DNA of 64,000 nucleotides, taken from assembly GCA_965649825.1 (NCBI GenBank), contig OZ287695.1:1035081-1099080 (forward strand). Direction: 5' to 3'. The stretch comes from Penicillus capitatus. Taxonomy: Eukaryota > Plantae > Chlorophyta. Each line of letters starts with the position of its first letter. Position 1 is the first letter of the stretch. Shown in pieces: positions 8,401 through 64,000 of the stretch. The position numbers and the translations under genes were made by a program. The notes beneath the pieces were generated by a model, which saw only the letters and a program-made list of their open reading frames with translations, did no database searches and was not told the origin of the DNA.

Positions 8401-9232
8401 CATTCTGAATCCCAAGCTCACGTTCACAGACAGAGAAACGGACCAGTGCATTGCCGATGGAATCGGTGTCCAACGTGGCGACGGATCGGCACTAGATGCC
8501 TACGATCTTAAGCGTCTTCAAGTCCGCCGTCATTTTGTGGCAAAATCGCTTAGACTCTGAAATTTTGTGCGTGTGGCAGTCTTACGCAAACAACCTGATC
8601 GACCATCATCTGATCCTCGATTTGGTGCCGTGTCTGGCACGGATGTATTTTTCGGCGAAGCTGCCGGTGGCGTTGTCCTATGGACAGGCAGTAATTTTGC
8701 TTTGTCTTGGGCTGCAGATGCGTGACATCAGTCACGTCGAGAAAGCGATGGATCTTCCACTGAACCAAGTCCTCGCCTTGTTCAGCAAAGCTGTGCGTCC
8801 TTCTATGTTCATCTCACCTTTACACATGCTCTTTAAGCGTAGATTCGCAAAATGCATGCTCTGCTGAGAAAAACAGCTGCCCCACCATCCACACAGCGAA
8901 TACTGCCGATGAAGCCGTTGCCGTTTTCAAGCGAGAGGGATGGGGAGAAATCTCCACGCGAAGATGTTTGCACCCTGTCATTGGCCGAGGCTCGTGACTG
9001 TTTTCTGCAGGTACCTGTCGAAGCCATTTCCAGAGATCTTGAGAAATTCAAAGTTGCCGACGTCGACATGGACACTCAGGATGTCGCCTTGTGCGAAGGG
9101 ACTGTCTTCAGCGTCAAGCGAAAAAGCAATACCGTATCCGAAGCACCATCTCTTCAAAAAGAATCCAAAGATCCGTCGAGAAAGAAAAAAAGAGCCAAGA
9201 AATTCAAAAACGCTCGACAACAGGATACCTAG
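5479..9232 (+). CDS. NAT10: RNA cytidine acetyltransferase (NAT10/Kre33)
   Basis: MKKKVDGRIRTLVEN, RPSVLWCYK, Walker A TAARGRGKSAAMGLA, STINGYEGTGRSLSLKL, YVASHYKNTPNDL, RIVRIAVHPD and a Lys-rich tail. Many ~50-nt introns. Confidence 0.97.
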
Positions 9233-9358
9233 TCATACCAAGCACCGTTTCCGTCCAATATCACACTTTGTCTCACTCTTTGCAAACAGTCAATGACGTC
9301 CACTAGACGGACCCATACAAGGATCGTCGTGCATCCCGATCCAAGCAACGACGCTTCT

Positions 9359-11085
<1,727 letters not shown>

Positions 11086-11695
11086 TTATACGACAACGAC
11101 GATGTGTGTCGTAAGCAACGGCGTTCTCCGGTCCTTCGCTGACCAGAGAATAGATTTGCCTAGGACCGGTGTGTGTGCCATTGCAGCTTCTGCTTCCCTT
11201 TCTCCTGGCCTACGCCCATCAGCGAGGATACTTGACGTGGTTTCACGCACAATGGCTCACTTTCGCTTACTGGAGAGTGAGAATCGGCAGGTCATTCGGT
11301 TCTCACTCTTTTTTCCAGTTGGTGTGACCTTTCTTGTCTGTTCAGCTTTTTTGGCTCCCACCCGGTGAAGCAACAAGAAGACCATGACACAAAGTGCTGT
11401 TGTCATACAGAGTTGCACTCCCATTCCAAAGCACGAGACAGTCATCTGTACTTAAACACTCAGCTGTCTTTTATAGGAGTCCACAACCACGGACATGGAG
11501 GGAGACGACAAAAAACTGGATTAGTCTACATTGCTGCAGCCTGTTGTCCGTTTTCTGCCTCTGCGGTGTATTTCATAAGATGGTGTCTCATCTCTTCAAC
11601 GTGGAGGCCTGTAAGGCCGTCGTCCAATTGTATATGGCAGACGCGGCAGGCTGCTATCCCTGTTATCATTCCATCATTGCTCACTCTCTTTTCAA

Positions 11696-12133
11696 TTAAT
11701 AATGACGCGACGTGGACCTGTAAAAGAAGAGTTTAAGGCCAATGCCCAGGACCAGAACAGAATCCGTCATGTCCTGCACAAGGTCTCGCACTTCCATCTG
11801 GTCCATCTTACACGTCAGCATCATCGTGACCTTACAGAATATCTGAGGATGATCATTTGACACCGAGAAGAGTACTTTGACGAGCTGATCCCTTGCCAGG
11901 ATCTTGGCTATGCTGCCCAGCACGTTGGGAGAGAATCCTTCTCGACCAATCGTGACGTTCGAGATCTCGTTGTAGAGTTCTCGCCGCATCGCCATGTTTT
12001 TGAGCTTCTGCTTCTCCTCGTACGTTAAGGGACGTTGATGTTTCGGCACACTGTGGCCTTGACGCTGATAAAAACGCCTCGCGATGTCGCGGAGTAAGGA
12101 ACCGATCGGAGAACTTCGACGGCGCAATAACAT
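11696..12133 (-). CDS. CRS1/YhbY (CRM) domain RNA-binding protein with Arg-rich organellar targeting peptide
   Basis: LTYEEKQKLKNMA...VTIGREGFSPNVLGSIAKILARDQLVKV...LVLGIGLKLFFYR matches the YhbY pattern. ATG at 12133. Confidence 0.75.
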   Translation of the reverse strand: MLLRRRSSPIGSLLRDIARRFYQRQGHSVPKHQRPLTYEEKQKLKNMAMRRELYNEISNVTIGREGFSPNVLGSIAKILARDQLVKVLFSVSNDHPQIFCKVTMMLTCKMDQMEVRDLVQDMTDSVLVLGIGLKLFFYRSTSRHY

Positions 12134-12158
12134 CGAACACGATACAATGGAAAGGACG

Positions 12159-13668
12159 TTACGTCTTGGCGACCATAGGCAAGACTTCGTTCGTCAACGG
12201 CTGATCTAACACAGCAAAAGGAGTGAGAAATGTGTGATATGAATGATGATAAGACCTGTAGCAAATTCTGTGATGTTTTGAATGGTCGTGTTAGCGATGT
12301 TGTTAAGGGCTTCATGCGTTAAGAAAGCGGAATGCGGTGTGATCAGTACATTGGGAAAGCTCTTTAGCGTATTGAATTTGCGATCCCACCACGCCATTCG
12401 CTTAGTAGAAGTGATTCTGGTGAAGTCTTTGAAAAAGAGATTGCCTGGAAAGAGTGAGATCACACTCTATTGCTATGAAAAGAGTGAGAGAGGTCACCTT
12501 CGTTGCCATAGACATCCATAGCACATCCAGCAATGTGGCATTTTTCGAGCGCCCCGATAAGAGCATCAGTGTCAACCAAACCACCCCGACTTACATTGAT
12601 CAAAATGGATGACGGCTTCATCAACTCCAATCTAACACGATGGTCACTCTTTTCGATCGGAGGGACAGAACTCGTCTATGCACAGGCACCTACCTTTCTT
12701 CATTGATGATGTGAAAGGTCGACGGATTGAGCGGACAATGCAGAGAGACAATGTCGGCGACTTCCATCAATTCGTCCATCGAGACGTACTCGACACCCAT
12801 CTGACGACATTCCTCCTTCGGATAGAGGTCATAGGCCAGGACCCGACATCCAAATCCCTAAACGCAGTTCGTTGCATACCACAGTGTTCGATCGATGGCG
12901 ATGATGTGACCTTCATGATGGAACAGAAGGCAGTACCTATTGCGCCCGTTCCAATGACACCGACCGTCTTTTCATACATCTCCATGCCTTCGAGCCCAGA
13001 CAGGGTGTAGTTTCCATGCCAGACACGGTTGTATGCTAAGTGGATCGATCTGTGTGGCAACGGGAGGCATTGAGAGTGGACAGCTACTGTGGTATCTACC
13101 GATTGAGCGCCATTAGCAAGGCGACGGCGTGTTCTGCGACGGAGTGCGGGGCGTAGGTTGGCACCCTTGCGATTTTTATTCCGAGGTTGGCGGCGTAATC
13201 GACATCGACTCGGTCATAGCCGGCACAACGCAGAGCGATCAGTTTGACACCTCCCGCGTTCAGTGCATCCAATACCTTCAGTCACTCTTCTCACTGTCTT
13301 CCGATGAAATCGATATGGTACTTCGCTATCGACGGTGTCATTGACGAAGCAGATGATGGCATCGTGTTTTTCGGCCAAAGCTGCTGACGACTTGTCCAGG
13401 CGTGGCTGGAGACAAAGTATGTGATGAGAGTAACCGTCGTGATGTGACGTGCCGTGAGCATGGTAGACTTTGGAAATGCTGCTTTGAGAGGTGCCTCGAG
13501 GAAATTCAGGACATAAGGCCTGGCCGAGAACGCAGCGACGCGGAAATCGGCGACATTCGCGATCCCATTCCCCGTTGCTTCGCATACGATGCGTTTCTTT
13601 GACGAAGTACGACGCGATAGCGCCGCATAGCACCCTCGGTGATTCGGCAGACGGGCTGCGATGCGCAT
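12159..13668 (-). CDS. D-lactate dehydrogenase (D-isomer 2-hydroxyacid dehydrogenase)
   Basis: VAAFSARPY, AIICFVNDTVD, YNRVWHGNYTLSGLEGMEMYEKTVGVIGTGAIG, NVLITPHSAFLTHEALNNIA. Last exon DQPLTNEVLPMVAKT* has its stop at 12161-12159. Confidence 0.92.
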
Positions 13669-45969: not shown

Positions 45970-48900
45970 TGAATCTACTGCAACGCACTCCTCTGAGGGT
46001 CTTTAGAGGTCGTCCGCAAATGCGTCTTTTGAACACTGGTGTAGGTTTTTTGGTTGCTATGCCTCTGCGCCTGCGTGAGTCATGCATACGTGCCGGTGAT
46101 TTATCCCTCCATGATCGAGCAGCACGGATTCGTCTATCACGAGGTTTGTCTTGCCAAGATGGAACTGCCATACGATCTGTTCTTCACCAGGATTCCAGAA
46201 GGGTGTTGAGTCTGCCAGGGGGAGTGGAACCGCTCCTGTGCAGACAGGGAGAAACGAGACCGTTTGATGAGGCAGACCGCGAATGCTCGGATGTTGTCGT
46301 CTTCACCAGTTCCGAGTCCATCACATTTCAGATTCTCAACCTGTCCACAAACGGCGTCATTCAGCCATTTACTTCCATACCAGAGGTCAGCTGCGATGCA
46401 AGAAATCGCTCGTATCGTAGCTGACATGTTTAGGTGATAGTACCTGCAGGCATAGATGACCAGATCGTAATGTCTGCCTATGGATCGGCGGGTTTGCTTT
46501 ACACTGTGGTATCTCAACGGGCAGTGGATAATTTTCATTATGATACTGCAACAGAATCGACAGTTGAAGAATCGGAGGCAGCCAAATCTGGTTTCTATGG
46601 ACCACAGTTCGTTTATGAACCAGTAGAGTCTGCAATCAGCGAAGAATTTGACCTGGAAAAAGACTCAGATCAGGGTGAAGGGATTGTAGGCATTGGTGCA
46701 GAAGCAGCAAAATTGTCCGAGATCAGCAGCACGGAGGACGAGGCAGATCCGTCCGAGATCAGCAGCACGGAGGACGAAACACGGGGCTCCGAGGTCAGCG
46801 AGCCGCCTCCATCGCCGTCATCCGAGGTCAGCGAGCCGCCTCCATCGCCGTCATCCGAGGTCAGCGAGCCGCCTCCATCGCCGTCATCCGAGGTCAGCGA
46901 GCCGCCTCCATCGCCGTCATTCGAGAGGAGCAGGTCGCCTCCATCGCCGTCATTCGAGAGGAGCAGGCCGCCTCCATCGCCGTCATCCGAGGTCAGCGAG
47001 CCGCCTCCATCGCCGTCATCCGAGGTCAGCGAGCCGCCTCCATCGCCGTCATCCGAGGTCAGCGAGCCGCCTCCATCGCCGTCATCCGAGGTCAGCGAGC
47101 CGCCTCCATCGCCGTCATCCGAGGTCAGCGAGCCGCCTCCATCGCCGTCATCCGAGGTCAGCGAGCCGCCTCCATCGCCGTCATCCGAGGTCAGCGAGCC
47201 GCCTCCATCGCCATCCGAGGTCAGCGAGCCGCCTCCATCGCCATCCGAGGTCAGCGAGCCGCCTCCATCGCCGTCATCCGAGGTCAGCGACCCGCCTCCA
47301 TCGCCATCCGAGGTCAGCGAGCCGCCTCCATCGCCGTCATCCGAGGTCAGCGAGCCGCCTCCATCGCCGTCATCCGAGGTCAGCGAGCCGCCTCCATCGC
47401 CGTCATCCGAGGTCAGCGAGCCGCCTCCATCGCCGTCATCCGAGGTCAGCGAGCCGCCTCCATCGCCGTCATCCGAGGTCAGCGACCCGCCTCCATCGCC
47501 ATCCGAGGTCAGCGAGCCGCCTCCAGCGCCGTCATTCGAGAGGAGCAGGTCGCGTCCATCGCCATCATTCGAGAGGAGCAGGCCCATCGAGTCCTTGCCC
47601 TCGCCATCTGACGAAGCAGACACTTCAGTGACACCCCCTGTTTGCCTTCATGAGTCATGTTTAACTCGATCAAGAACGTCCAATAATTCCAGAAATTTAA
47701 TCGTCGCAGAAGATATAAACTCGGGAACAGACATTCAAGTAATACCCGCTGAATGTAATTCCTTGTTGTCTTTGTCTCGATTCCTGAATGACGTCTTTAG
47801 GGTTCTCTGAAGAAGAAGAAGAAGACTCGGCAGAGAATGACGATGAAGACGAATCTCAGTCTTTGCGGAAGCTTTTGAGAGAGCTCCCGGAAACTATCGA
47901 GACAACTGGACCTGACAGTGTCGACATCAGTGTCATCGAAGCGAACAGCACTGCCGATTTCCTTCATCCAGATGGAAGAATCAAAGAAGATCGCGTATTA
48001 CTGATGGAGTTGCATGTGAGCAAGATTCCGTCAAACACACTGATTCCTGTAGCTGTGCAATTCGGAAGCAACGTCAGTCGTAATATCTTCGTTTATCGAT
48101 GCACGTCCCCAGTGAGAGCAAAGATCGGATTGGTCCGGAGTCCTAAAAGTCAATCAGACACTGGTACTGACGAGCATTTCCAGTATCGAGTGGATTTTTC
48201 AAACTACATTCTTAACCCTCTGAATGGCGACGAGATGGATTGTTCAGATGTCCGAAATGCATTAGCAAAGTTCACGTCGCAGCACTTGACAAGTGGATCC
48301 GATCTCAAAGCCAATGACTTGCAATCTGTGAGGAATGCAGCGAGAGATCTGTCTGACTGCTTCTCGCAGCCATCATCTACGGTTCCAGAAGAAGTCGTCC
48401 GAGTGACTGGTGTCTCGGCAGAGATTAACGGAACGCAAAATCTACAGCTGCAAAATCTCCGAAAAGGCGAAAGCCCGCAGACGTCTGTACTGATCTCCTT
48501 TGAAGCCAATGTGGAGAGGCGTACGAGGATGGAGATTAGCATTCAGCCTCCGGCAGGCGTTGTTGATCTTGCTGGACAGCCGATTGAGGAGCAATCGGAA
48601 TCGTACAGAATTGAACGAAGAAATCGGGCGACACAGAGAGCAGTAGACCAAGCAGAGAAACTTGGAATAGCGTTTACAGTAATGGCCAGCACTTCTGTGG
48701 CCACTTCCGTCGCAGTGTCTGTTGGATCACCTGTAGTCATCTCCGTGTCACAATCGATGATTGCCAGTGTTGCGGAAGCGATGACATTTGCCAGGAGGTC
48801 CATGTCAGCCGCTCTTGAGTTACTCAGAGTGTGTCAGCACATTTATCTCGTATCCAAGATGGGCGTGCCAAACATGCCTGAGAATTTTGAAGCATTTGGA

Positions 48901-50959: not shown

Positions 50960-51965
50960 TCAATTCGATTGAAACGAAAAGCATCGAACAGACTTCCCCA
51001 TAGACGAAAGATTCGAATGCTGCCTTCTCAATGGCGTCATATGTCGCCTGATCAGACGACTGTCAACGTTCCCGCGTCCGAAAAGACTCGCTCTTTCCAT
51101 CGATGTTCGCCACACGTACAATGACAAAAACTCGGCGACGCACGGTGTGCAGAGGAAAGTCTTAAGTCGCCATCTCCACAGGCCAAACGCATACAACACA
51201 CGACTGAACACATCCATTGTCGCAGGAGAATGCGAAAACGAGGAACGCCTCAGCGAGATTCTGCTCGATGAAGGCGTGAACCGACCTTGTGTGTGACTGT
51301 CGATGTCCGTGCTTTTCGAGTGGCTAATCGCGTGTTACGCAGAGAGCAAGAGCAGATCACAGTGATCTCGGTATGGCCATTGCGCGGCCGAGAAAAGCAG
51401 CGCGTGCTCCGCTGGATGATTGGTCCTTCTCCGCATCTCGAACAGTTGGCGTTCTTCTGTTTGGCACACATTGAACGTTCCATCCGGCTTCGCTTTGCCG
51501 AAAGCATTATCTGTCTGTTCTGTGCCACGAATGCAAGCAAGTGCATTCTGGCTTTGACTGTCTTATGTATGCGAGAAGGACATTGTGTCTTGTTGCAGCT
51601 TCTTTTGGCGTTGAACATATCTCCCGTAGACACGAACGAATGCTTGGCAGATACCGAATATCCGCTGACAACCCATACAATAACGGACGGCTAATCGAGA
51701 TTCGCCCGGCTTCGACCGCAGTGTCGTTGCATAAATGTACTGTTCGGGAATAACAGATACGAATGGTCCATTCGCGTCGCCCACGCAGTCTGTCTGAGAC
51801 GATATCGGGTTGCTGGTGCTGCCGCTGACCATCACAGATTTCTGTTTTTTCGATATCCATATCAACATCCGAAAGCGTGTGGTTCACGTGCATCTGCTCA
51901 AGCGATATTCCAGAAAAGACTTGGGAAATAACAAATGCGACAAGCAGCTGTCGGAAAGCAGACAA
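50960..51965 (-). CDS. Putative secreted Cys-rich hypothetical protein (multi-exon)
   Basis: Signal-peptide-like MSAFRQLLVAFVISQVFSG followed by Cys-rich minus-strand ORF pieces. Exon structure not resolved. Confidence 0.4.
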
Positions 51966-52188
51966 TGAACGGAGGACCGCAGATCGGACCCTGTTACCTC
52001 ACCAGACAACCAGGACGATCCTTTTGTGCCTGCCCTATTGACTGTCTTTGTGTAAGACGGCGAATCTTTTGCGTTCTTCTCGCAATCGAGGCCAGTGGGC
52101 CAGACATTTGACGGACGCGTGATTCAAGAATTCTGTACGACAGTTGAGAGTTAACCTTCTCGCTTGTCGCCGTGTTACCTTGGCCATC

Positions 52189-55100
52189 ATGGCAGAGTTC
52201 GGATGGGAGGCTGCCGTTGCGATTCTGTGCATAGTGGTAGCGATCGTCATCCTCTTCAAGGACTGGGCTGGGGCAGATTTCGTCTTCTTGGGTCAGCCGC
52301 CAATCTTCGAAAAGCGGAAACGCGACGTTCTTACCCGCAGGGGTTCTTTCTGTGCTCATGGTGACGCGCATCATCAGCGTGGACGAGGGGTTGGCAGGAT
52401 TCTCCAACGAGGCGCCTCTTACTGTCGCAGGTGAGCAGACAGGTGCCATCGACCCGTGGGGAAAGACGTATGTGTCCAGTGCTGTTCGTTGTGGCGATGG
52501 GCATCTCAGAAACGGGATGTCTGGACGCTCTCTTTCAAGTCGTCCTGGGAAATCCGACGAGTACGGGATCGGCCATGGTCCGCATGATGCTGCCCGTGAC
52601 CATCCTCTCCGCCTTCATGAACAACACACCAGTTGTGGCCATTATGATTCCCATCGTCAAAGTGTGGTGCCAGAGATCTCATCTACCTCCAGGACAGGTA
52701 GGCACAAGATCTCGGTGGTGGACACTATCCAGATGCTTTCTCTCCAGCTGTACATCCCACTGAGTTTTGCATCGATGCTCGGCGGAACCTGCACTCTCAT
52801 CGGCACGTCGACCAATCTGGTGGTGGCAGGTAAACTGGCGACTGACGGGAGAGGACACGTGTTAGTTCGTGCGGTTTCTAGGTCTGATTGACGACATGGC
52901 AGAAAGCGCCGAAGAGGGTGAGGAGATACCCAAGCAGAGCTTCTTCGACATTGGCAAGTTCGGAGTCCCGGTGGCCGTCGGCGGACTCATCTACATGTAT
53001 CTCTTTTCTCCGCTGCTTCTCCCTGGCCTCTCCGAAAGCCAAGTGCAATGTTTGGGCGAGCATCGCAACGCATTCCACTTCGATTCCTCTTTCTCTAGAC
53101 ACTCAGAGTTCTTTCCTCGTTGGACTGGAGGTGACGGAGAACTCGCGTGCGATTGGCTGCACGGTGGACGAAGCTGGTCTGCGTGGTCTGGATGGACTCT
53201 TTCTCGCATCCGTCAGGTAGGATCGATTCAGCAGTATCCCTCGAGTGAAGGCACTGCACTGTGCGGCAGACGTGGACAGCACATTATCAGTGCCGTGGGT
53301 CCGGAGTTCGTCATTGCCGCCCAGGACATCCTCTACTTCACAGGTTCCCTCCATTTGATGCATTGCTGGAGACGACAGGGTGCTGCTAGGTGTCATGGAC
53401 GGACTGCAGAACGTTGTGGACACCTTTGCGCTGCGACCCGTCACAGACGAAACGGAAGAGTGCGTGCCTGATAGTGAGTTCCTTACAGTTTACTGAATGA
53501 CCCCCGTGTTGTGAAAGATTAATGCCAGCTTTGTTGGGATCGCCCGTTCAACATTCTCCGTCGCTGAGTTCTCCAAATACATTCAACGAGGAGGTCGAAA
53601 GATACCACCGTCAGCAACGGATTCCTCCGTCCTCGAGCAGTCAGACGCGACCAATGCTGGACCGTTCCAGCGTTGCTCCTCTCAACCGTCTGCTGCAAGC
53701 AGAGGTTCTCTGAGACGCAACACACGACAGCTTCTTTCAGTTTCGAGAGTGCTGCAGATCGCAGAGGACGCTCCGGTTGTCGGCCACACTGTCAGAGACG
53801 TCGGTTTTCGATCCAGATTTCAAGCTGTAGATAAGCACCCTCGTGCATCTCTGGGTGCTGAGTTCTCTGTTATCAGGCCATTCTGGCCGTCTCCAGGAAC
53901 GGAGAGAAAGTCCCGGGGACGCTGGGGAGAATCGTCCTGCAAGCCAAAGACCTCCTCGTCCTCGACTGTTCACCCGTAAGACACCCGTCCTCCCGCAACG
54001 CCTGTCTGGACTTCCTGCCTTTCTCAGTCCTTCGACGAACACTCGGACGATGTTAAGGCGAATCTTACCCGCATCAGGAAGTCCGATGCCAAGTCCGAGA
54101 GGGAGTTCATGGTTGCCATGGAGGTCGAGACGCGCGGCCCAGTCAAGTGTGCATCTAGCACCGGCATCTGCTGACGGCGTGCCCCGTAGCTCGTGAACAA
54201 GTCCATCGAGAAGGCAGGTCTGCGCGGACTGCATCAGCTGTATCTGGTGGAGATTGAACGCCGAACGGGTCATCGGATTCCGGCCGTATCGCCGACGGAG
54301 ATTCTGGAGGCGGGCGACGTTCTCTGGTTCTCTGGAGTGCTCGAGAGTGTCGCCTCTCTGCGAAAGATCGCCGGTCTCGTCCCGCACGGAGACCAGGTGA
54401 AGAAGTTGAACCACTCTCACCAAGAGAGGAGGCTCGTCGAGGCCGTCATCTCCCCGATCTCCGTTCTGGTCAGTGCCACGACACGCCTTAACCTGCGCTC
54501 CCGTGCCGTTGTGACCAGGTCGGCAAGACAGTGAGAGAGAGTCGATTCCGAACGCGATTCCACGCAGCGATCATCGGTGAGTTGCCTGCTTTTGTGAGAA
54601 CGGAGGAGATGGCGGCGGCACAGGTGTCCATCGTCAAGGCCACCGCCTGAAGGAGAAAATCGGAGACATCGTCCTCCGAGGAGGCGATGTCTTGCTTCTG
54701 GACACGGGTTCTCAGTTCGCCATCGAAAACAGAAACAACCGGAACTTTGCCCTCGTCTCGGAAGTGGCCAACAGCCATACTCCAAGGTGCAATGTGCCGT
54801 ACGCCGCGATGACCGATCCAACATCTTTGCTTTCAGATTCGATCGCGCCTTGGTGGCGATGCTGGCATTGGCGGCGATGGTCTTGTCTCAGCTGGTGGGC
54901 GTGGCGTTCGATCGCACGTTTGTGGAGTTGATCACCGCCGCTTTGATCACATCTGCCATCATGCTGATGGCGCAGTGCCTCACGGGCGAACAGGCCAGGG
55001 CCTCCGTCAAGTGGGATGTCATCATCACCGTTGCTGCTGCGTTTGGCGTCAGCACTGGCATCGAGAACAGCAACGTTGCCAGTCTCATCGCCGACAGCCT

Positions 55101-55752
55101 GGTCTCCGCAGGTGCCGTTCTCGAGTCCGGCTAAAGCGAAATGGCGGCGCTGTCTGACAGGAAAAGCCATCGGAGGGAATTTCTTCGTGATGTTCGCCAT
55201 CTACTTCGCCACGATGTTGCTGTCCAATCTCGTGGCGAACAATGCAGTGGCGGCGCTGATGTTTCCTGTTGCCATGAACGTCGCCAGACGTAAGTAGCTT
55301 CTGCACCTTCACGATGTTCTGTTCCGATCACCTGTCTCGCAGAGAACGACATCTCTCTGAACCGCATGGCCGCGTTGCTGATGCTGGGCGCATCCTCCGC
55401 CTTCATGTCTCCCTTCGGGTATCAGACGAACCTCATGGTGTTTGCTTCGGGCGGATATACGATCGTCGACTTCGTCAAGTTCGGGGCTCCGATGCAGATC
55501 TGGCAGATGGCCGTTTCGCTCATCGTTCTCTTCTTGGAAGACCAATGGCCGCTAGTATGGATCGCCTCCTTTCTCGTGGCAGGTCTAGCGATTTCGTTGA
55601 GAAAGATCAAGGAGTCCTGCTGCATGTCAAAGAAAAAGAAGGCGCTTACACACGTCTCCTCGAGAGAACAATCAATGACGCAGCTCATCGTCACATCCAT
55701 CCGTGGAGGAGGGGGCACGCAGAATGGAAGCGATAGAAGAATCCGCGCTTAG
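52189..55752 (+). CDS. SLC13-type Na+/sulfate cotransporter with TrkA-C domains (algal SLT/SAC1-like)
   Basis: FGWEAAVAILC...DWAGADFVF, SAFMNNTPVVAIMIP, LSFASMLGGTCTLIGTSTNLVV, RCK-C repeats (SIEKAGLRGLHQLYLVEIER), LGASSAFMSPFGYQTNLMVFASGGYTIVDFVKFGAPMQ. Confidence 0.9.
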
Positions 55753-56535
55753 TTCTGGGCGAGTGGGCGCATTCATGTCTCCGTCTGTTTTTGAAATGTT
55801 TGGCATCAAGCGCTCTCTCTCTCTGTTGTTGCTGGAAGGCTCGAGTGGAGTTTTCAGTGCCTACGCATTCTTTATTGGAATCGACCTTTCTGAATTCGCT
55901 TAAGTATCTGTTTTGCAGTTTCAAGATATCTGTGGCCCCAGTTCGTTTATGTTACTGTCTTTCTGTTTGCTTGAACATGACAGCTGGCACTGAGTTTCAT
56001 GATCTTGGCGCGACAAACGATCGTTGAAGGATCATTCTGAGTGTAGCGGCAGGCACCGTGCGTGAAGAGACAAGGAAGAATCTAGGCAGTGGACAGCTAA
56101 CTGGCAAAACTAAAGTCAGTGCAGTGCCAGAAACTGGACCTCTCTGTGTTGCGTGAGCTCTCGGACGACTAGAATCCGCCTTCTTTGCATTCGTGTTTTA
56201 ATGGGCGTCCCTTTGTCTAACAGTTTACCGTTTTCTGATAACCAATGGCGATGAAAAGCGCTCGATCGGCTGTCTGCACCACCAAAGAAAAACGAAAGTT
56301 CTTCGACTGCGAGTGAAAAGACGTTCGTTGCGTATGCATTGACAGAGAGAAAGCGTCTGTCGGACAAGCGTTACTGCAACCGCCTGTCATGTCACCATTG
56401 CGGGCGTCGAAACTTCGGCTCTGTCTTCTGTCTCTCTCTTTAAGCCATCAAATCGGCGTCTTACGCAAGACATCGCCGAGATCCGATGGACATTTCAGAG
56501 AGAGAAGCGCGAAGCGGCGTCAGCATCGACGTTTA

Positions 56536-56579
56536 TCGATCGAATAATCACACAACTTCGATCGAATAATCACACAACT
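56536..56579. repeat. Exact 22-bp tandem duplication (TCGATCGAATAATCACACAACT x2)
   Basis: Seen directly. Confidence 0.9.
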
Positions 56580-56697
56580 GTTGACATTGTAACAAACGAC
56601 TGTTTGCGACAACACCTCACACATGAACTGCACAGGTCCAGACACACAGAGACAGATGACTAGTCGTGATTATTGCCAGACACAGAGCTTGTTCTTA

Positions 56698-57063
56698 TCA
56701 GAAACCTCCCGTCGTTCTCAGCGTCTGCAACAACGCTGCAGCACATTACACAAATGTCACATCGACCGCCGTCTCATCGTGGCTGCCTACCTGACCCAAC
56801 CACCACGAAAATGAAGAACCCCAGGACCACCGGGCCAACCGGAAAGCGCTTCTTCTGCGAGCACGGTCACAGAACTGAGACCTGCTCATCGAAGAGGGGT
56901 CTCTCTCACCTCCACGGACGAAACGATGGGGTGTCCTCGACGGTGGCCGTGGAATTTGTCGTTCTTGGCGCCCTGCACTCTCTTTGACACCGTCTAGAAG
57001 AAGACAGTTTGTCCGCGGCGGTGTCGAGGAAACTGGGATGTAGCTGTGGTGCAGACGAACCAT
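56698..57063 (-). CDS. SERP1: Stress-associated ER protein (SERP1/RAMP4)
   Basis: Four exons, the first being ATG only, give M|TVSKRVQGAKNDKFHGHRRGHPIVSSVE|KKRFPVGPVVLGFFIFVVVGS|ALLQTLRTTGGF*. This matches the RAMP4 PVGP.LLGFF.FVV.GS motif. Not in the ORF track. Confidence 0.88.
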
Positions 57064-57213
57064 GGTAAAAGTAGAGATACTCTTGGCTCGGGATGCAAGA
57101 AGAACAGTTGCTGATGTTATTTAACTCGAAGACGGAGCGACGGTAAGTAGTTCGAATCTTTCGAGACGGATTTTGATAACAGCGGAATTTCTAGATCGAA
57201 TATTTGTACGCCA

Positions 57214-60200
57214 TCACGCATTCATCTCTGTCCATTTCCTCCACATCTTCCTGTACTCGAATTCCAGGCGCTGCACGTGTCCTCTGGCATTGCAGAGCTC
57301 AGAGCTGAGCATCCGGACGCGCAGATGCATGTGCAGCTTGGACAGGGCCTCGAAATCGGATGCCTTCTCCACGGCGCGTTGCTTGTAGTCTTCGATCGAT
57401 GTGGCAATCCAGCTCTCATCCAAACCCACCGCACGGATCAGACTCACTCCGACGTTCTGCGCGTGACACCTTCCGGCCATCGTCAAACAGGGTACACCCA
57501 TGAACAAGCTCTCGCAGGTTGTGGTGGTGCCTACAGGCAGAGGAAGCTGCAGACGAGGATCCTGCAGGGAATGGTGGCTTGCCAGCATACGGCCACGCGT
57601 CCAGACTGATGTCCATGAGCGAGTACAGGGACAGGTGCTCTTTGGTTTGCACGGAGAGGGGCAGCAGATCGATGCGCCAGGAGGCAATGCCCTCCAGTTC
57701 GAAGCGCTGACTGAACTGCGCTCGGGTGGACGCACATGCAAAGCTCTTGTTCTTGAGAACGAGACGGGCTTCGGGAATGGCCAGCAGGATTTCGGACCAG
57801 GTCTACGTCACTCTTCTCGTGTGAGGAAAACGAGAGACAGATATCTGACGACTCACTCTGACCACTTCGTCCGTGATCTTGGCGAGATTGTTGAACGACC
57901 CGAACGTCACGTATCCATTCTCCAGACACGGAGCTGGCGTGGGAGGCGGAGGATCGATGTACGGCGTGTAGCACAGGAAACAGTGGGGCAGCCGGACGAG
58001 CGCCTCAGAAAAACACTGTCGACAGGAAGCAACTCATACAAGGATGATGCAGTTTGTGAGATCCAAATCACCTGTGTTGTCTCTTCTGGGTCACAGTGGA
58101 CATCTGTAATGCGATAGTCGATCTGCGTCAGACCCGTGGAATTGGGATAGCCGATCCACGTAACCTGAACGACCAGAGCAGTTCTTTCTGAGATAGAAGT
58201 GCCGGCGTCACTTGAACGGGAGCCGGTTTCATGGCCAGCGTTCCCAGTCTGTTGTGCGAAAAGTGTCCGCTGAGTTCCACGAGGATGTCCACTTCGTCCT
58301 GGCGAATCTGCTCTGCCAGTCCCTGTTCGGTCAAATGCGTCACCTCCTTCCACGTCCCTTTGATCCCTTTCACTTTGCCTTTAAGCAACGCCGTCTTGTC
58401 ATCCGACTAGAGAACAGTCCATGTCACTCATCGAAGAAAATTGTTTGGCTTGCTCTGGGAGAACAGTTGTACACGATCAGCTCGAACTGACCCGGATCGT
58501 GTTCGGACAGTGGCGCTTCGGCAAAGTACGATACGGAGTGCGTGCACAGGTCGCCGGATATATAACCAACCTACTCCGCGAATACATCCTGCTGGCATTC
58601 TTCCGGAACGTATGGCCTCACTCTGAGAACCCTGTCCGGACTCAAGTCTCTTGTGGAACGGTCAAGAGGTGGGAGCTGAGGGATGCGTTCCGAGAAGGCG
58701 AGGCCCCACTCCAAGTGATGATCGCTAACTTCTGGGGATGCTCCGCATATCACGTAGTTCAATCCAAGGAGGAAGTTGTCCGCTGGACTTCTGCTTTCCG
58801 GTGCAATGATAAGACACTTCTTGTAGGACTCCAGTGACTAGGGCATAGCAGAAAGGAATCATGCCGAGCACAGACGAAACGATCGAAACACTTCGTGCGA
58901 CAGCCCGATGTCCTTCTTAACGACGCCCAAGTTGTTGTAGGCTTCGAAGTACTGCGGATTAGATCGAATGGCAGCCTCGATGTTGCTGATGGCCGCTGCC
59001 GCCTGTCCTTGCATGGCATAGAGCAGTCCTAGATTGCTCAGACTCTGGGAACAACAACACGTCTCTTCGAGAACCTTCATTCGAAGAGAGGCACCATGGC
59101 GAAGTCGGGCTGTATGGCGAGGGCGTTCTGGTAGCACTGAATCGCCTTCTGATCTCTGCCCATCTCCTTGTACAGGACGCCGAGGTTGTTGTGGACTTCG
59201 GGGAGACGCTTGTTGTGATGAATCGCTGTCTCGTACATGAAAATCGCTTTCTCCTTTTCTCCGTTCTCGGCCAGAGCAACACCCAGATTGTACATCGCCT
59301 CGACGCACTTCACTTTCTCTCGCACACCTCGAAAAGGAGTGAGATGTGTGACTTACGGCTGGGTTCTGCGAGAGGGCTTCGTAGTAAAGTCGGAGGGCCT
59401 CTTCTGTGTTCCCCTCCGCTTTTGACTGTGCTCCTATGGCAACGAGCAGCCGCGAGCAGCTCTGTCGCAGCTCGTCCGATTCTGGCTGCACTGCCAGTGC
59501 CTGGCGATGACAGTGGAGCGAGTCTTGAAACTGGCGGCGATCGAAGTGGATGGCTGCCATGTTCCCCCAGGCCATGATGTGAGAAGGATCCTCTTCAACT
59601 GTCATCCTGTAATACTCCATTGCCTTGTCCACCTGGCAATGCTAAAACCCTCCATCAGCTCAGTGAAGGCGATGCTCACCTGCTGGGATTCTGCATAGGA
59701 CACTGCAAGATTGTACAGAGCTGGAGGGAACCCAGGATGGGCCTTCAGTGCTTCCCGGTATCTGCTCGCCGCTTCGTCTCCTTTCCCTGAGGTGCTCGAT
59801 TGCAGGACAGCGTCACGATGTGTGACATGGAGTACCTTCGTTCTTGAGAACTGTTCCTTGATCGGTCAACACTCCTGCCAATGTCTTCTTGAACTCCTGC
59901 GCATTTCTCACACTGTAAGCTTTTACACGAACGGTTATGGCACTGAACGTTGTTTTCTGGCTTCAAATCGCAGGCTCTCTGCACGAGTTCGAGACACGAT
60001 CGGAGATTCCCTTGCTGGTGATGAACATCAGCCAGATGCATTACGGTTTCTGCATTTCTGGCATCATAAGCCTCCGCTTTCGCAAAGCAAACTATGGCCT
60101 GAGACTCCACACTGCGCTTTCGCACAGGTAACCTCGTGCAGAAACGACCTTTGTCAGATTCCCCGAGTGCTTCAGACACTCTCCTTCCAGCACTAGCAGT

Positions 60201-60436
60201 TCGGCGTGCGTCGGATGTTTGAGAAGGATCTGTTCAGTCTGTCGGAGGGCTTCTTCGAATTTCTCGCTCTTGATGAGCAGTCGGCACACACGCAAGACAC
60301 GTCTGATCTCCGTTTCTTCCGACGAAGTGACTTCTGCCGAAGATGACGATGAATGGACTTCCAACGTCGAATCGGGATCCAGAGAAGAGCACTGCTGCGA
60401 CTGCGCAACCATCCTTGCTTCCTTATCGTCGTTCAT
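57214..60436 (-). CDS. SPY: SPINDLY protein O-fucosyltransferase (TPR repeats + GT41 catalytic domain)
   Basis: Many TPRs (YNLGV, HNNLGVLYKE, AYNNLGVVKKD), [69 protein letters not shown]. Confidence 0.93.
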
Positions 60437-61323
60437 AACGAATAGCGACGAGACAGAAGCCGAAAACAATCGGTCAAACTGAAGTGAAGTGACTGCAGAC
60501 GTAACTGGCCTCGATTCGACAGAGTAATATGACTGCTCAATGGAAACGGCTTAAATGAGTTCATGTTTCGCACAGACTCCGATTCACATGTCCTAATCAG
60601 TGTTGCCTGAAGACAACATGCTGAAGAAGATATGAAGTCTTGATCTATGCTGCTTTTTCGTCTCCTTCTTCTCTGTTCTCCCTCCGTGGTTTATAAGGCG
60701 ATCTTAGTTCTCTCTTCTGCGATGCTTGTGAGATTCATCGTTCTGCAATCAGAGATAGCCGCTTTTGGGTTGTGCTTCCCGATGGAGCATACTTGGAACA
60801 GACATGCACTGCTAACGGCGAGATTTGAACGACAACGGCACAGTCACTGTTGTCGAAATGGGCTACTAATTTCCACAATGCATTGCTGGCATCGTTGATG
60901 GTCACTGTCCATCATCCAATCTCGGCCTGGCTGGAACAGAAACCGTTTCACCAGGAGCACATGCTGTCAACGAAGAGTTCAAAACTCCTGGATGCATCGA
61001 TCAGCAGTGTTTTCTTTGACATCTTCGCAGCCAATGATTTATATTCATTATCCACCGAAGCATTAGATGCATAGACTGCTGGATTTGATATGTGACAACA
61101 CAGAGAAGAGTCTGTGCAGAGACAACACGGAAGGCACAATGCCCATGCATATCAGCTCAATACCAGCAAATTCAGACCGATAAACGAGACGTGTGAACCG
61201 GTTTGTCTCTTCGCGACGTCTGGCAATCATCAGACAGCGACAGGGAAGCAAGTACGTTAATGGCGCAATCACTCCATTACTTAAGCGCCCGCCATTGCTG
61301 CAAAACACATTCTTGTCTCCAGC

Positions 61324-64000
61324 ATGAAGCTTTTCTGTGATTCGCGTTGCCGTCTCGGCTTTCATTTCTCTCTGTTACTTCTTCTCCTATTCTTCCACGT
61401 AGCAGCATGTCAAGAGAAAAAAGGTACTGTCACCTGGGTTGGCATTTCCCGACGCGGGTATGTGTTTTTACGGTTCAGAAGCATCGGCCTCCAAGTCGCT
61501 CGTTCATCTTGTCATCGTGAGTTTATAAAGCGCGAATTGATTCAGGTTTCAACACCTGTTCTTCTCACAGGGTGAAGAGGCGCCTAGAGGACGGTTCCCG
61601 TACGTTTGTAGTCTCTCCAGACGTGAAGACGGAGTGCATCGCTGCGGCGGATTCCTTATTCGACCACAATGGGTGGTCACTGCAGCACATTGTGTCGCCC
61701 CAGACTGTCCGGGCAGCATCGGCAGAAATCCGCTTGTCCGATGCGGTATTCACGAACTCGATGTAAACGACCCTGAAAAAGTAACCTGCTTACGTTTCTT
61801 TACTTTCCTGTCGCGACGGAAGTCTGTAGGTATTCAGCGGAGAGCAGAGCTACTGGCCCGGATCGTGGACCGGCAACGCGAACGATGGATGCGACATTGC
61901 CGTCGTTAAACTAAACAAAGAAGCGAATCTCACGCTGCCGTCGATTAATAAGCAGAGCGGTGGATTCCGCTCAGGCAAACTATTCACCGCCCTCGGTTGG
62001 GGACTGGATGAGAATGGAAGCGTTCCAAACTCCCTACAGATGGCAAACAGTCTTGTTTATACGAAACACGACCATTGCAAAGATTTCCTGGGAAACGCCG
62101 TCAAGAATCACTCGATCTGCGCTGGATTCTCGAACGAGAATACATGCAAAGGTTTAATGCCTAATGCATTACTCTTCTGCCAAGCCATCTCTGTTGAAGG
62201 TGATTCTGGTGGTCCGTTGTTGATTCCTTATGTGTTTGAAGGCAAATTAGCAGCTGGGAATCCAGAACACGACATGATTTTCGGCGTAACATCCATAGGG
62301 TCCGAAGATTGCATCGATGATCCATCACCGACCATCTACACCAGTATCGGTGCATTCTGGGACTGGATTGAGGAAAGAATCGGCGAAGGTCCAAAGGTGA
62401 TTAATCGGTTCTCCGAATTTTTTCCTCGTGTCTGATCGCCGAGAACATGAAAAGATCGACAGAATTCTGTTTAGTGACCTTCATCAGATAATGTACGTTC
62501 TTCATAGGTGGACGATCCTGAAACTGACGATCCGTCAGTGAGCCCAGAAGAACAGGAACTTAGAGAAGAGCGCAAACGGCTGAGGGGACTCTCTCGGACA
62601 GAACTGATTAAGGTTGGTTGGCAATAAAGAATGATGTGAAGGGACAGACAGTTCCATAGGAAGCGTATCGCTGCACAAAAAAGGATAGTGCATTGAAGTT
62701 GGAAGCCGCTCTGCTGGAGGGACTCGAACCAGATTCTTTCTACGCGTCTTCCGTCTGGTCAGGATATTGGGAACGGAAGCGTTTTGCTCTGTTGCACTGG
62801 TCGGCGTATTACAATGCGGAAAAATGCACTGAGGTAGTGTATTCTCTTGGCCTACTCTGGAACACAGAGTCTAGACGCTTCGGTTCTATCTATTGAATCT
62901 CTGTGATTAAAGGTTCTTTTGGAATATGGCGCAAGCGTGGACAAGCGCGGCACATCCAGAACAACTCCTCTGCATGTGGCAGCGTGGACAGAACATGCGG
63001 TGGTGAAGGTAAACCAGAAAAGCGATCTTTAATCGTCCACTTCAACGTCTATTGTCAGATGCTGCTAGACGCAGGGGCCGATGTCGATGCGGTCGATGAC
63101 GATGGAAGAACTCCACTTCATGAAGCCGCTTACAACGAAAACCCCGAAGTTGTACAGGTGCATGTCGATTTGCCTTAGTTCTTATGTCCACGTTGTTGCT
63201 GGTTGCAGCTGCTGCTAGACGCAGGGGCCGATGTCGATGCGGTCGATAAATATGGAAACACTCCACTTCATGAAACCGCCTACAATGAAAACCCCGAAGT
63301 TGTACAGGTGCATGTCGATTTGCCTTAGTTCTTATGTCCACGTTGTTGCTGGTTGCAGCTGCTGCTAGACGCAGGGGCCGATGTCGATGCGGTCGATAAA
63401 TATGGAAACACTCCACTTCATGAAACCGCCTACAATGAAAACCCCGAAGTTGTACAGGTGCATGTCGATTTGCCTTAGTTCTTATGTCCACGTTGTTGCT
63501 GGTTGCAGCTGCTGCTAGACGCAGGGGCCGACGTCAATGCAGTCGATAAATATGGAACCACTCCACTTCATGAAGCCGCCTACAAAGAAAAACCCGAAGT
63601 TGTACAGGTGCATGTCGATTTGCCTTAGTTCTTATGTCCACGTTGTTGCTGGTTGCAGCTGCTGCTAGACGCAGGGGCCGATGTCGATGCGGTCGATAAA
63701 TATGGAAACACTCCACTTCATGAAGCCGCCTACAAAGAAAAACCCGAAGTTGTACAGGTGCATGTCGATTTGCCTTAGTTCTTATGTCCACGTTGTTGCT
63801 GGTTGCAGCTGCTGCTAGACGCAGGGGCCGATGTCGATGCGGTCAATAGAAAGGGAGAAACTCCACTTCATAAAGCCGCTTACTTCAACGAAAAACCCGA
63901 AGTTGTACAGGTGCATGTCGATTTGCCTTAGTTCTTATGTCCACGTTGTTGCTGGTTGCAGCTGCTGCTAGACGCAGGGGCCGACGTCAATGCAGTCGAT
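61324..64000 (+). CDS. Secreted S1 (trypsin-fold) serine protease fused in frame to an ankyrin-repeat array (runs off the window)
   Basis: Signal peptide; catalytic triad TAAHC / DIAVVKL / GDSGGPL. Predicted phase-0 splicing: ...EGPK(62396)|62508-62612|62660-62833|62913-63008|63059... leads into ankyrin exons with no stop. The 62397-62507 intron is the least certain junction. Confidence 0.78.
63059..64000 (+). repeat. Tandem array of 150-bp cassettes (99-bp ankyrin exon + 51-bp identical intron), at least 7 units
   Basis: Exons start at 63059, 63209, 63359, 63509, 63659, 63809 (102-bp exon) and 63962. The intron GTGCATGTCGATTTGCCTTAGTTCTTATGTCCACGTTGTTGCTGGTTGCAG is identical in all six complete copies. 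Confidence 0.97.

Follow-up and report, generated by a model that had tools for sequence, protein, structure and literature searches.

A chymotrypsin-fold protease with a C-terminal array of single-exon ankyrin repeats encoded in the green alga Penicillus capitatus

We analyzed a stretch of 64,000 nucleotides from Penicillus capitatus (assembly GCA_965649825.1, contig OZ287695.1, positions 1,035,081 to 1,099,080 of the forward strand), hereafter called the window, which ends within a gene for a protease joined to ankyrin repeats. After splicing, positions 61324-64000 of the plus strand form a single open frame of 1878 nucleotides (nt) or 626 amino acids (aa) that runs from an ATG at 61324 to the end of the window. 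The encoded order is a signal-peptide-like N-terminus, an S1A protease, a charged linker, an N-terminal cap (N-cap) and ankyrin repeats. At most three quarters of one protein-coding chlorophyte gene, counted from its 5' end, lie in this region. All 14 introns are of the GT-AG type and measure 47-111 nt; in this eukaryotic DNA with its many short introns, the unspliced open reading frames (ORFs) of the region are fragments only. A preliminary description of the sequence had proposed one continuous frame assembled entirely through phase-0 splice sites. The continuous frame stands, and the four junctions it named (62396/62508, 62612/62660, 62833/62913 and 63008/63059) are all GT..AG and phase 0, but introns 1 and 4 are phase 1, the others being phase 0, and a 38-nt mini-exon had been overlooked. 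The features of the gene are as follows; residue numbers of the conserved pocket and of cysteine pairs follow chymotrypsinogen, while His86, Asp138, Ser226 and the like number the window protein.

61324-61423, plus strand: exon 1, 100 nt; start codon and signal-peptide-like N-terminus ending QEKK; phase-1 donor GTACTG
61479-61516, plus strand: exon 2, the mini-exon, 38 nt; a short pro-segment and the counterpart of chymotrypsin residues 12-18
61571-61780, plus strand: exon 3, 210 nt; N-terminal barrel of the protease, His86 (61688-61690) in TAAHC, Cys42-Cys58 pair
61830-62151, plus strand: exon 4, 322 nt; Asp138 (61893-61895) in DIAVV, NLT sequon (from 61926), Cys168-Cys182 pair
ending at 62151, plus strand: 3' part of exon 4; Asn189-Thr190-Cys191-Lys192, then a phase-1 donor
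62200-62396, plus strand: exon 5; G-D-S-G-G-P with Ser226 (62205-62207), Gly216, Cys220 and Thr226, end of the protease domain
62508-62612, plus strand: exon 6; charged linker
62660-62833, plus strand: exon 7; N-cap, its 3' end forming the helices of a first, degenerate ankyrin repeat
62913-63008, plus strand: exon 8; ankyrin repeat, 96 nt, phase 0
63059-63157, plus strand: exon 9; ankyrin repeat, first unit of the amplified array
63209-63307, plus strand: exon 10; ankyrin repeat
63359-63457, plus strand: exon 11; ankyrin repeat, DNA identical to exon 10
63509-63607, plus strand: exon 12; ankyrin repeat
63659-63757, plus strand: exon 13; ankyrin repeat
63809-63910, plus strand: exon 14; ankyrin repeat, 102 nt, one extra codon
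63962-64000, plus strand: exon 15, cut by the window end; its first 39 nt are identical to exon 12
63056-64000, plus strand: tandem array of 150-bp units, at least 6.3 copies, running off the window

Two further assemblies provided the loci for comparison. Locus L012 in ENA ERZ26696514 contains the ortholog of the window gene, and loci L001, L009 and L010 in ENA ERZ25074695 contain paralogs. Contig ctg340449_36x_l of ERZ25074695 aligns in reverse orientation with window 7359-12579 at 98.9% identity (57 mismatches and 2 gaps in 5.2 kb) and, judged by this identity, is another haplotype, individual or assembly version of the window. As the two are not the same sequence, exact look-ups of four window ORFs gave no match. 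Because L001 comes from the same assembly as this window-like contig, we treat it as a paralog or a duplicated segment. ERZ26696514 represents a related species, with 94% identity in phytoene desaturase and 83% nucleotide identity in the flanks. Automatic exon-chain prediction kept in-frame introns and overshot one stop, and was used as a guide only; exon ends were checked by hand for L001, and the first eight exons of L012 were checked against the window.

Joining exon 1 straight to 61571 reads G+GG followed by TGA (61574-61576). Because this direct join encounters a stop, the mini-exon at 61479-61516 is required. In both L001 and L012 it is 41 nt long with an identical GTGAGT donor. Intron 4 (62152-62199) is 48 nt, in frame and stop-free, and splits C-K | G-D-S-G-G-P; its retention would place 16 extra residues between Lys192 and Gly193. 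Splicing is expected, as relatives with continuous ORFs read C-x-G-D-S-G-G-P without an insert. In every copy examined (the window, L001, L012, P0002, P0004 and P0005) this intron has the same length of 48 nt and is in frame and stop-free, and its translations are similar among those copies. Retention could yield an inactive isoform through an insert in the oxyanion-hole loop, or the pattern could reflect chance among related copies.

A 17-nt motif, TACTTAAGCGCCCGCCA, lies at 61278-61294 on the plus strand, 30 nt ahead of the start codon, and, with up to 3 mismatches allowed, has no second occurrence in the 64-kb window. Four paralogs carry it just 5' of the ATG (L001 5440; L010 4318, 9373 and 13427), and the core of the motif, TAAGCGCCCGCCA, is kept in the ortholog (L012, about 9461). 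It may be a promoter or 5' untranslated region element specific to the family.

The protease domain matches Pfam Trypsin (PF00089) at residues 46-280 with an E-value of 3e-37 and a score of 129 bits against a cut-off of 20.6, covering profile positions 3-220 of 220. A total of 366 PDB sequences match the domain at E<=1e-10, kallikrein and factor XI among them; of the solved structures, bovine chymotrypsinogen A (1acb) is the closest, with an E-value of 3e-23. A match to Trypsin_2 fell under threshold (22.6 vs 27.6 bits), and no PDZ match was obtained in the Pfam scan. Alignment with chymotrypsinogen places His86, Asp138 and Ser226 on His57, Asp102 and Ser195, within TAAHC, DIAVV and GDSGGP, so that both the triad order and the GDSGGP motif of S1A enzymes are present, in agreement with the intact His/Asp/Ser reported in the preliminary description. 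Cys71/87, Cys199/213 and Cys222/261 align to the S1A pairs 42-58, 168-182 and 191-220; the pairs Cys1-122 and 136-201 are absent from the window protease in this alignment. An insertion specific to the family, with a conserved G-x-P-x-x-D, follows the Ser195 motif. By these residues the predicted protease has the intact catalytic apparatus of a chymotrypsin-fold S1A enzyme.

The S1 pocket consists of Asn189, Gly216 and Thr226, residue 189 being Asn220 of the window protein (62139-62141). Asn therefore occupies the position of Asp189, the mark of the trypsin-like Arg/Lys subclass. Under established structure-function rules for S1A enzymes, cleavage at Arg or Lys is not expected with an Asn189/Gly216/Thr226 pocket. 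The earlier label of a trypsin fold is correct for the fold, as seen from Pfam and 1acb, but does not extend to a trypsin-like pocket.

The N-terminus is built from basic residues (3 K/R in the first 12), a hydrophobic core of 15-17 residues (maximum Kyte-Doolittle 11-residue mean of 2.84) and a c-region of small residues. An N-terminus of this n/h/c type is kept in five paralogs and the ortholog, and a hydrophobic N-terminal stretch is found in most full-length family members. The signal peptides of the copies are alike, reading MKLF...AAC|[QR]E with a c-region of AAC/AGC-[QR]E. The NLT sequon is conserved, and none of the family members examined has KDEL or HDEL at its C-terminus. Most complete members have 2-4 cysteines just after the last repeat, in the form D-x-I-C-x-C...C-x-E-G-x-C-G in Bryopsis and Ostreobium. 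These tail cysteines, and a 6-Cys linker module found in two relatives (below), are typical of proteins that fold in an oxidizing compartment and point to such folding here. Entry of the window protein into the endoplasmic reticulum (ER) is likely on these features and on the three S1A disulfide pairs. The protein had been described as secreted; passage into the secretory pathway is the likely part of that claim, with the exterior, the wall and a vacuole as candidate destinations.

The proposed acidic linker is the exon at 62508-62612, which encodes an acidic stretch and then a basic one. All paralogs keep the linker and N-cap exons at the protein level, and the linker donor has the same location in each. 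A match to Pfam Ank positions 6-31 spans the junction of exons 7 and 8, which corroborates the N-cap-like ankyrin helices suggested for the end of exon 7. The N-cap exon is followed by seven full ankyrin exons and one partial exon, where at least seven had been counted before, with one repeat per phase-0 exon of 96-102 nt. The array shows the hallmarks of the ankyrin class (PF00023/PF12796), namely tandem units of about 33 residues and the TPLH helix-turn-helix and hairpin motif, and the Pfam ankyrin families match at E-values from 2e-77 to 1e-47 (Ank, 2e-77 over 7 stretches; Ank_2, 1.5e-70).

Tandem Repeats Finder (TRF) identified a 150-bp period with 6.3 copies at 63056-64000 (95% matches, score 1646). 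Each unit is composed of a 99-nt ankyrin exon (102 nt once) and a 51-nt intron. Across the six complete copies the introns are 100% identical while the exons vary at 18/99 sites (Fisher p 0.0004). Exon variation lies in two patches, codons 13-17 (D-K-Y-G-N / D-D-D-G-R / N-R-K-G-E) and codons 22-28, and these take in repeat positions 2, 3, 5 and 14 in the usual ankyrin numbering. In designed ankyrin repeat proteins (DARPins), these are among the randomized positions of the hairpin tip and helix 1. The ratio of nonsynonymous to synonymous differences (pN/pS) summed over pairs is 1.3, with pN 0.19 and pS 0.14 in the patches and pN 0.015 and pS 0.038 elsewhere. The partial seventh unit has the same three variants as the fourth, a hint of a higher-order repeat of 450 bp.

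The ortholog contains the 150-bp unit once (L012 11792-11937), 78-80% identical to every window copy. Amplification of the unit is therefore specific to the lineage of the window, and we infer that the window copy amplified one unit at least six-fold after the split from the related species. Arrays of the paralogs have the same period at 72-81% identity and comprise 5 to about 15 ankyrin exons, all single-repeat and phase 0. This range, together with the single unit in the ortholog against at least 6.3 copies here, upholds the earlier characterization of the array as expandable. Because every repeat has a phase-0 exon of its own (about 99 nt, with an intron of about 50 nt), repeats can be gained and lost without breaking the frame, most likely by unequal crossing-over between 150-bp units. 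GC-AG introns (GCGAGT, GCAAGT) occur at ankyrin exon donors of paralogs and ortholog (L001 7358 and 7654; L010; L012 11366 and 11966). The donors of the window copy are all GT, unlike the recurrent GC donors in L001, L010 and L012.

L012 is collinear with window 51876-60513 (82.7% nucleotide identity) and 61195-63011 (73%), and the splice sites of the first eight exons are at homologous positions. Exon lengths are 97/41/210/322/194/177/177/102 in L012 and 100/38/210/322/197/105/174/96 in the window. All of the differences are multiples of 3 (72 nt in the linker exon); intron lengths differ by 0, 0, 0, 0, 64, 11 and 9 nt and show no multiple-of-3 constraint. The ratio of nonsynonymous to synonymous substitution (dN/dS) between window and L012 is 0.22 for the protease, 0.33 for the linker, 0.38 for the N-cap and 0.82 for the first ankyrin exon, and the introns are 69% identical. 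Given dN/dS values of 0.33-0.38 and frame-keeping lengths relative to the ortholog, the linker and N-cap are translated in this frame. L012 continues with five more single-repeat exons, a capping exon ILVDAGASKTITNISLEKPFDVICVQAYPKCSRSERASLKRLLRP (12007-12150) and a stop.

At least seven paralogs are arranged in tandem clusters, with four in tandem in L010, one in L009 and two in L001. The copies in these three loci have a signal peptide, trypsin domain, linker, N-cap, ankyrin array and C-terminal cap (C-cap), all on one strand; about 2-3 kb separate the genes, and the introns within them span about 40-110 nt only. Exons 3 and 4 have the same sizes, 210 nt and 322 nt, in the window, L001 and L012. 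The N-cap exon of L001 gene 1 (6844-7025) is 182 nt long and has a one-base frame break, while the rest of it is well conserved once the shift of frame is allowed for; the cause is either an indel of the assembly or recent decay into a pseudogene. A TPR-repeat gene is positioned head-to-head with the protease gene, just upstream of it (window 58859-60469, minus strand). A copy that is 84% identical lies upstream of paralog B in L010 (2801-3922), and another is found at L012 7630-8351. As TPR copies accompany copies of the protease gene, the duplicated segment spans both the TPR gene on the minus strand and the Trypsin-ANK gene on the plus strand.

Relatives in other algae were sought with a profile search of 1.84 billion representatives, a local ankyrin profile scan and a Pfam check that confirmed ten carriers; together these returned at least 15 further Trypsin+Ank clusters. 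They include five proteins of Bryopsis sp. KO-2023, all encoded on one 7.4-Mb contig: BSKO_04685 (GMH36812.1), BSKO_04697 (GMH36824.1), BSKO_04699 (GMH36826.1), BSKO_04794 (GMH36921.1) and BSKO_05102 (GMH37229.1). Ostreobium quekettii proteins P0006 and P0017, annotated as 'Peptidase S1 domain-containing protein', have the same architecture. The next neighbor of the Ostreobium Trypsin+Ank gene on its contig is another trypsin. The nearest trypsin-domain relatives in the representative search also include, within P0355-P0368, giant multi-protease proteins (P0355, for instance: 4066 aa, 14 matched stretches). Five sequencing runs yielded Logan contigs of 1.9-3.0 kb with P0008 (579 aa, Trypsin+Ank) as an uninterrupted ORF; a second uninterrupted Trypsin+Ank ORF on Logan contigs is P0009. 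The genomic copies seen are interrupted by about 12 or more introns, and in Ostreobium the gene for 631 aa extends over 7.2 kb. In view of their uninterrupted ORFs compared with these intron-rich genomic copies, the P0008 and P0009 contigs are most likely cDNA assemblies. Both proteins contain a 6-Cys module between the protease and ankyrin domains (P0008, about 394-449; P0009, about 354-409) with the pattern C-x-C-x4-G-I-S...G-C-H...C-Y...C...F-P-G-A-x-W-x-x-C-E-D, for which there was no Pfam match at E<=1.

Among the 1.84 billion representatives, the Ostreobium and Bryopsis proteins have the trypsin domains closest to that of the window protein. They resemble it in the order of signal peptide, S1A domain, linker, ankyrin repeats and capping repeat and in a D-x-[IV]-C tail, have 2-11 ankyrin repeats, and their genes are clustered. 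They are, however, just 27-33% identical to the window protein overall, and the linkers differ, being Pro/Ser-rich in Ostreobium and containing the 6-Cys module in Logan P0008 and P0009. The window gene has a block of near-identical amplified repeats, whereas the Ostreobium and Bryopsis members have none. The capping repeat and tail align across the family of the window alga and the Bryopsis, Ostreobium and Logan members; the signature ...GA[SDN]K...[TA]P.D.[IV]C..., with further Cys and an ...L..LL-type end, is shared by the ortholog, the paralogs, Bryopsis, Ostreobium and Logan. Of the features by which we define the family, the window sequence shows a signal-peptide-like segment, a single S1A domain and an in-frame C-terminal ankyrin array; the capping repeat would lie past the window end. 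The preliminary description had predicted a single continuous gene and a family of Trypsin+Ank paralogs. The syntenic ortholog, the paralogs in their tandem clusters, the transcript-like contigs and the annotated Bryopsis and Ostreobium proteins agree with the first prediction, and the second is realized in the same paralogs, ortholog and relatives.

No publication on a trypsin-ankyrin fusion in Bryopsidales was found, the Bryopsis, Ostreobium and Halimeda genome papers included. The architecture is already present in databases as unnamed Ostreobium and Bryopsis hypothetical proteins, and the window gene is a new member of this uncharacterized family. The Ostreobium genome preprint reports an expansion of S1 peptidases, with 189 genes labelled 'Peptidase S1, PA clan'; signal peptides are given for about 40% of these, and a role in breaking down external protein is proposed. 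In comparison, 57 S1 peptidase genes were counted in Caulerpa lentillifera (bioRxiv 10.1101/2020.07.21.211367).

Considering these observations as a whole, we think it probable that the gene yields one exported, fused product in which the ankyrin groove steers the protease. The protein would enter the ER, fold in an oxidizing compartment and have its place of action outside the cytosol: it would be released to the wall or seawater, or kept in an endomembrane or vacuolar compartment. In this model the ankyrin groove is probably an exosite for a protein partner, be it a substrate, a target or an anchor, and so directs a protease whose S1 pocket of Asn189, Gly216 and Thr226 is itself not trypsin-like. 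Paralogs that differ in repeat number and in binding-face residues would each have a different partner.

Several observations weigh against this proposal. The window end cuts the array, and a C-cap and stop of the window gene itself would lie beyond it. An isoform that ends after the protease is possible, with candidate ends at the 62433-62435 stop, if intron 5 is retained, and at AATAAA 62622-62627 in intron 6. The activation site is not canonical, since His43|Leu44-Val-Ile-Gly aligns to Arg15|Ile16-Val-Asn-Gly, and its residues are not kept in paralog L001 (...Pro-Tyr-Ile-Ile-Gly); a Lys|Ile-Val-Gly-Gly activation junction was seen only in the Logan relative P0009. The N-terminal hydrophobic stretch could instead serve as a signal anchor. 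Ankyrin repeats fold and work mainly in the cytosol, and an ankyrin domain in an oxidizing compartment, which we infer here from the sequence, is unusual. With regard to the array, the finding that exons vary more than introns comes from six short copies, and exons and introns are about equally diverged in the older paralog arrays. The synonymous change is also high in the patches (pS 0.14 vs pN 0.19), and because it is concentrated there, patchwise gene conversion fits as well as selection.

The ankyrin domain may not be a targeting exosite at all, and could act as an intramolecular inhibitor, an oligomerization scaffold, or a tether to a wall or membrane protein. The non-canonical activation site calls for some other control of activity, and the C-terminal cap and tail, kept from Ostreobium to the window alga, suggest a constant partner at that end; a conserved N-cap Cys (ECT[EK]) and three extra conserved protease Cys might also form an interdomain bridge. 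As these roles leave unexplained both the range of 5 to about 15 repeats and the clustering of recent differences at binding-face positions, we regard them as unlikely, although they are the likeliest of the alternatives. Still less likely is a nutritional or matrix-degrading extracellular protease whose ankyrin array binds the material to be digested. The degradative role suggested for Ostreobium S1 peptidases (bioRxiv 10.1101/2020.07.21.211367) would agree with it, as would the Trypsin+Ank members of that alga and the trypsin adjoining one of them. However, the family is also clustered in free-living Bryopsis and in the window alga, neither of which bores into skeletons, and bulk breakdown needs no diversified recognition array.

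The protease and ankyrin exons could in principle belong to two genes, or be separated by obligatory early termination, with the protease gene ending after exon 5 or 6 and the ankyrin array transcribed apart. The unspliced protease frame does stop at 62433-62435, intron 6 contains an AATAAA, and intron 5, at 111 nt, is the longest intron. Yet the ortholog has an intron 5 of just 47 nt, and the L001 intron lacks the AATAAA of intron 6. All paralogs and the ortholog keep the protein sequence of the linker and N-cap (dN/dS 0.33-0.38, with frame-keeping lengths only). The TACTTAAGCGCCCGCCA motif and a start codon with a signal peptide are seen ahead of the protease part and at no other place. Intact fused ORFs are also found on transcript-like contigs and in Bryopsis gene models built partly from RNA-seq. 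Two separate genes are thus very unlikely on the comparative evidence. That the near-identical array is an assembly artefact or the window copy a decaying pseudogene is scarcely credible: tandem repeats of 150 bp do pose difficulties for assembly, the array is cut by the window end and L001 gene 1 has its 1-nt frame break in the 182-nt N-cap exon, but the frame is open through all 15 exons with every splice site intact, arrays of the same period exist in paralogs at 72-81% identity, and the copies differ at specific codons while their introns are identical, which collapse or mis-polishing would not give.

The fused, exported protease that we favor is made of ordinary parts (an S1A protease, ankyrin repeats and 99-bp exons), but their combination and setting are not ordinary. 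S1A enzymes are rare in green plants and algae but expanded in Bryopsidales. With S1A peptidases such as chymotrypsinogen A (1ACB) the window protein has in common the Trypsin domain, the triad motifs, three disulfide pairs, and a signal peptide with a pro-segment. It differs in its Asn189/Gly216/Thr226 pocket, in lacking an Arg/Lys-Ile activation junction, in the insertion after the Ser195 motif and in the long C-terminal ankyrin extension. The HtrA/DegP proteases follow the same logic, being non-cytosolic trypsin-fold proteases with C-terminal domains that capture substrates or regulators. They belong, however, to the S1C subfamily, have PDZ domains and form cage-like oligomers; no sequence relation beyond the fold was found, and the window protein, an S1A enzyme with no PDZ match, is not one of them. 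The animal mosaic proteases (C1r/C1s/MASP, factor XI/kallikrein and CLIP) likewise pair a secreted S1A domain with recognition modules and have grown by tandem duplication. Their modules are N-terminal and disulfide-rich (CUB, EGF, CCP, apple and clip), never ankyrin, and activation is at Arg-Ile, whereas the window protein has no such Pfam domains and its extra domain is a C-terminal ankyrin array.

The top PDB matches of the ankyrin array are Ankyrin-1 (E 1e-164), DARPins and latrotoxins. Ankyrin-R/B, DARPins and latrotoxins share canonical 33-residue repeats with the window array, and human ANK1 has many 99-bp single-repeat exons. The DARPin design of a constant framework with variable positions 2, 3, 5 and 14 is mirrored in the window array, and spider latrotoxins have ankyrin arrays that act outside the producing cell. 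None of these proteins is fused to a protease, and ankyrins and DARPins are cytosolic or made in the cytosol.

Should the proposed export and targeting hold, the family would provide a natural ankyrin binding domain, fused to a protease, in the secretory pathway or outside the cell, an arrangement that protein engineers make by linking designed ankyrin binders to effector domains. The gene also illustrates a simple genomic route to new binding surfaces: with each repeat on a phase-0 exon next to a short intron, repeats can multiply, disappear or be swapped while the frame stays intact; the amplification in the window copy took place within the time that separates two closely related algae. Siphonous green algae are single giant cells that survive wounding and regenerate from extruded cytoplasm. 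The clustered, expanded family is a candidate set for studies of wound response, defence or wall remodelling in Bryopsis, an alga for which RNA interference has been reported (PMC12961179).

Roles in defence, allorecognition or wound response, which the preliminary description had raised, are speculation. We offer as a doubtful extension that the family is a germline recognition-plus-effector system of coenocytic algae, with exon-modular ankyrin arrays, diversified in their binding face, aiming a stored or secreted protease. The targets, just as tentatively, might be foreign proteins (of pathogens, epiphytes or grazers) or cytoplasmic proteins of the alga itself that wounding exposes. If true, such a system would resemble the clotting and immune protease cascades, built with ankyrin repeats beyond the cytosol. 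A gene with NB-ARC and TPR domains (NLR/STAND-like, >1576 aa) is located at L012 16336-20669, about 4 kb downstream of the ortholog, and runs off the locus. It would fit a defence neighborhood, and is a single observation.

Other features of the window and the related loci lie apart from the protease gene. A phytoene desaturase exon occupies window 9359-10672 on the minus strand as an uninterrupted ORF of 437 aa. Its best named relatives are those of Bryopsis sp. KO-2023 and Chlamydomonas leiostraca, both 75%, and in a neighbor-joining tree without support values the window clade adjoins Bryopsis. The closest named relatives of the protease all come from Bryopsis and Ostreobium, and a bryopsidalean origin of the window is probable. 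The ORF at window 46434-47810 on the plus strand contains 24 copies of a 33-nt repeat (46788-47573, TRF score 1306) encoding (SEVSEPPPSPS)n and looks like a Pro/Ser-rich, extensin- or HRGP-like wall protein. Near the L009 paralog are a 3.7-kb array of 43/72/157-nt tandem repeats (L009 1-3720) and a gene with VWA_2 and C-type lectin domains (L009 16330-17853).

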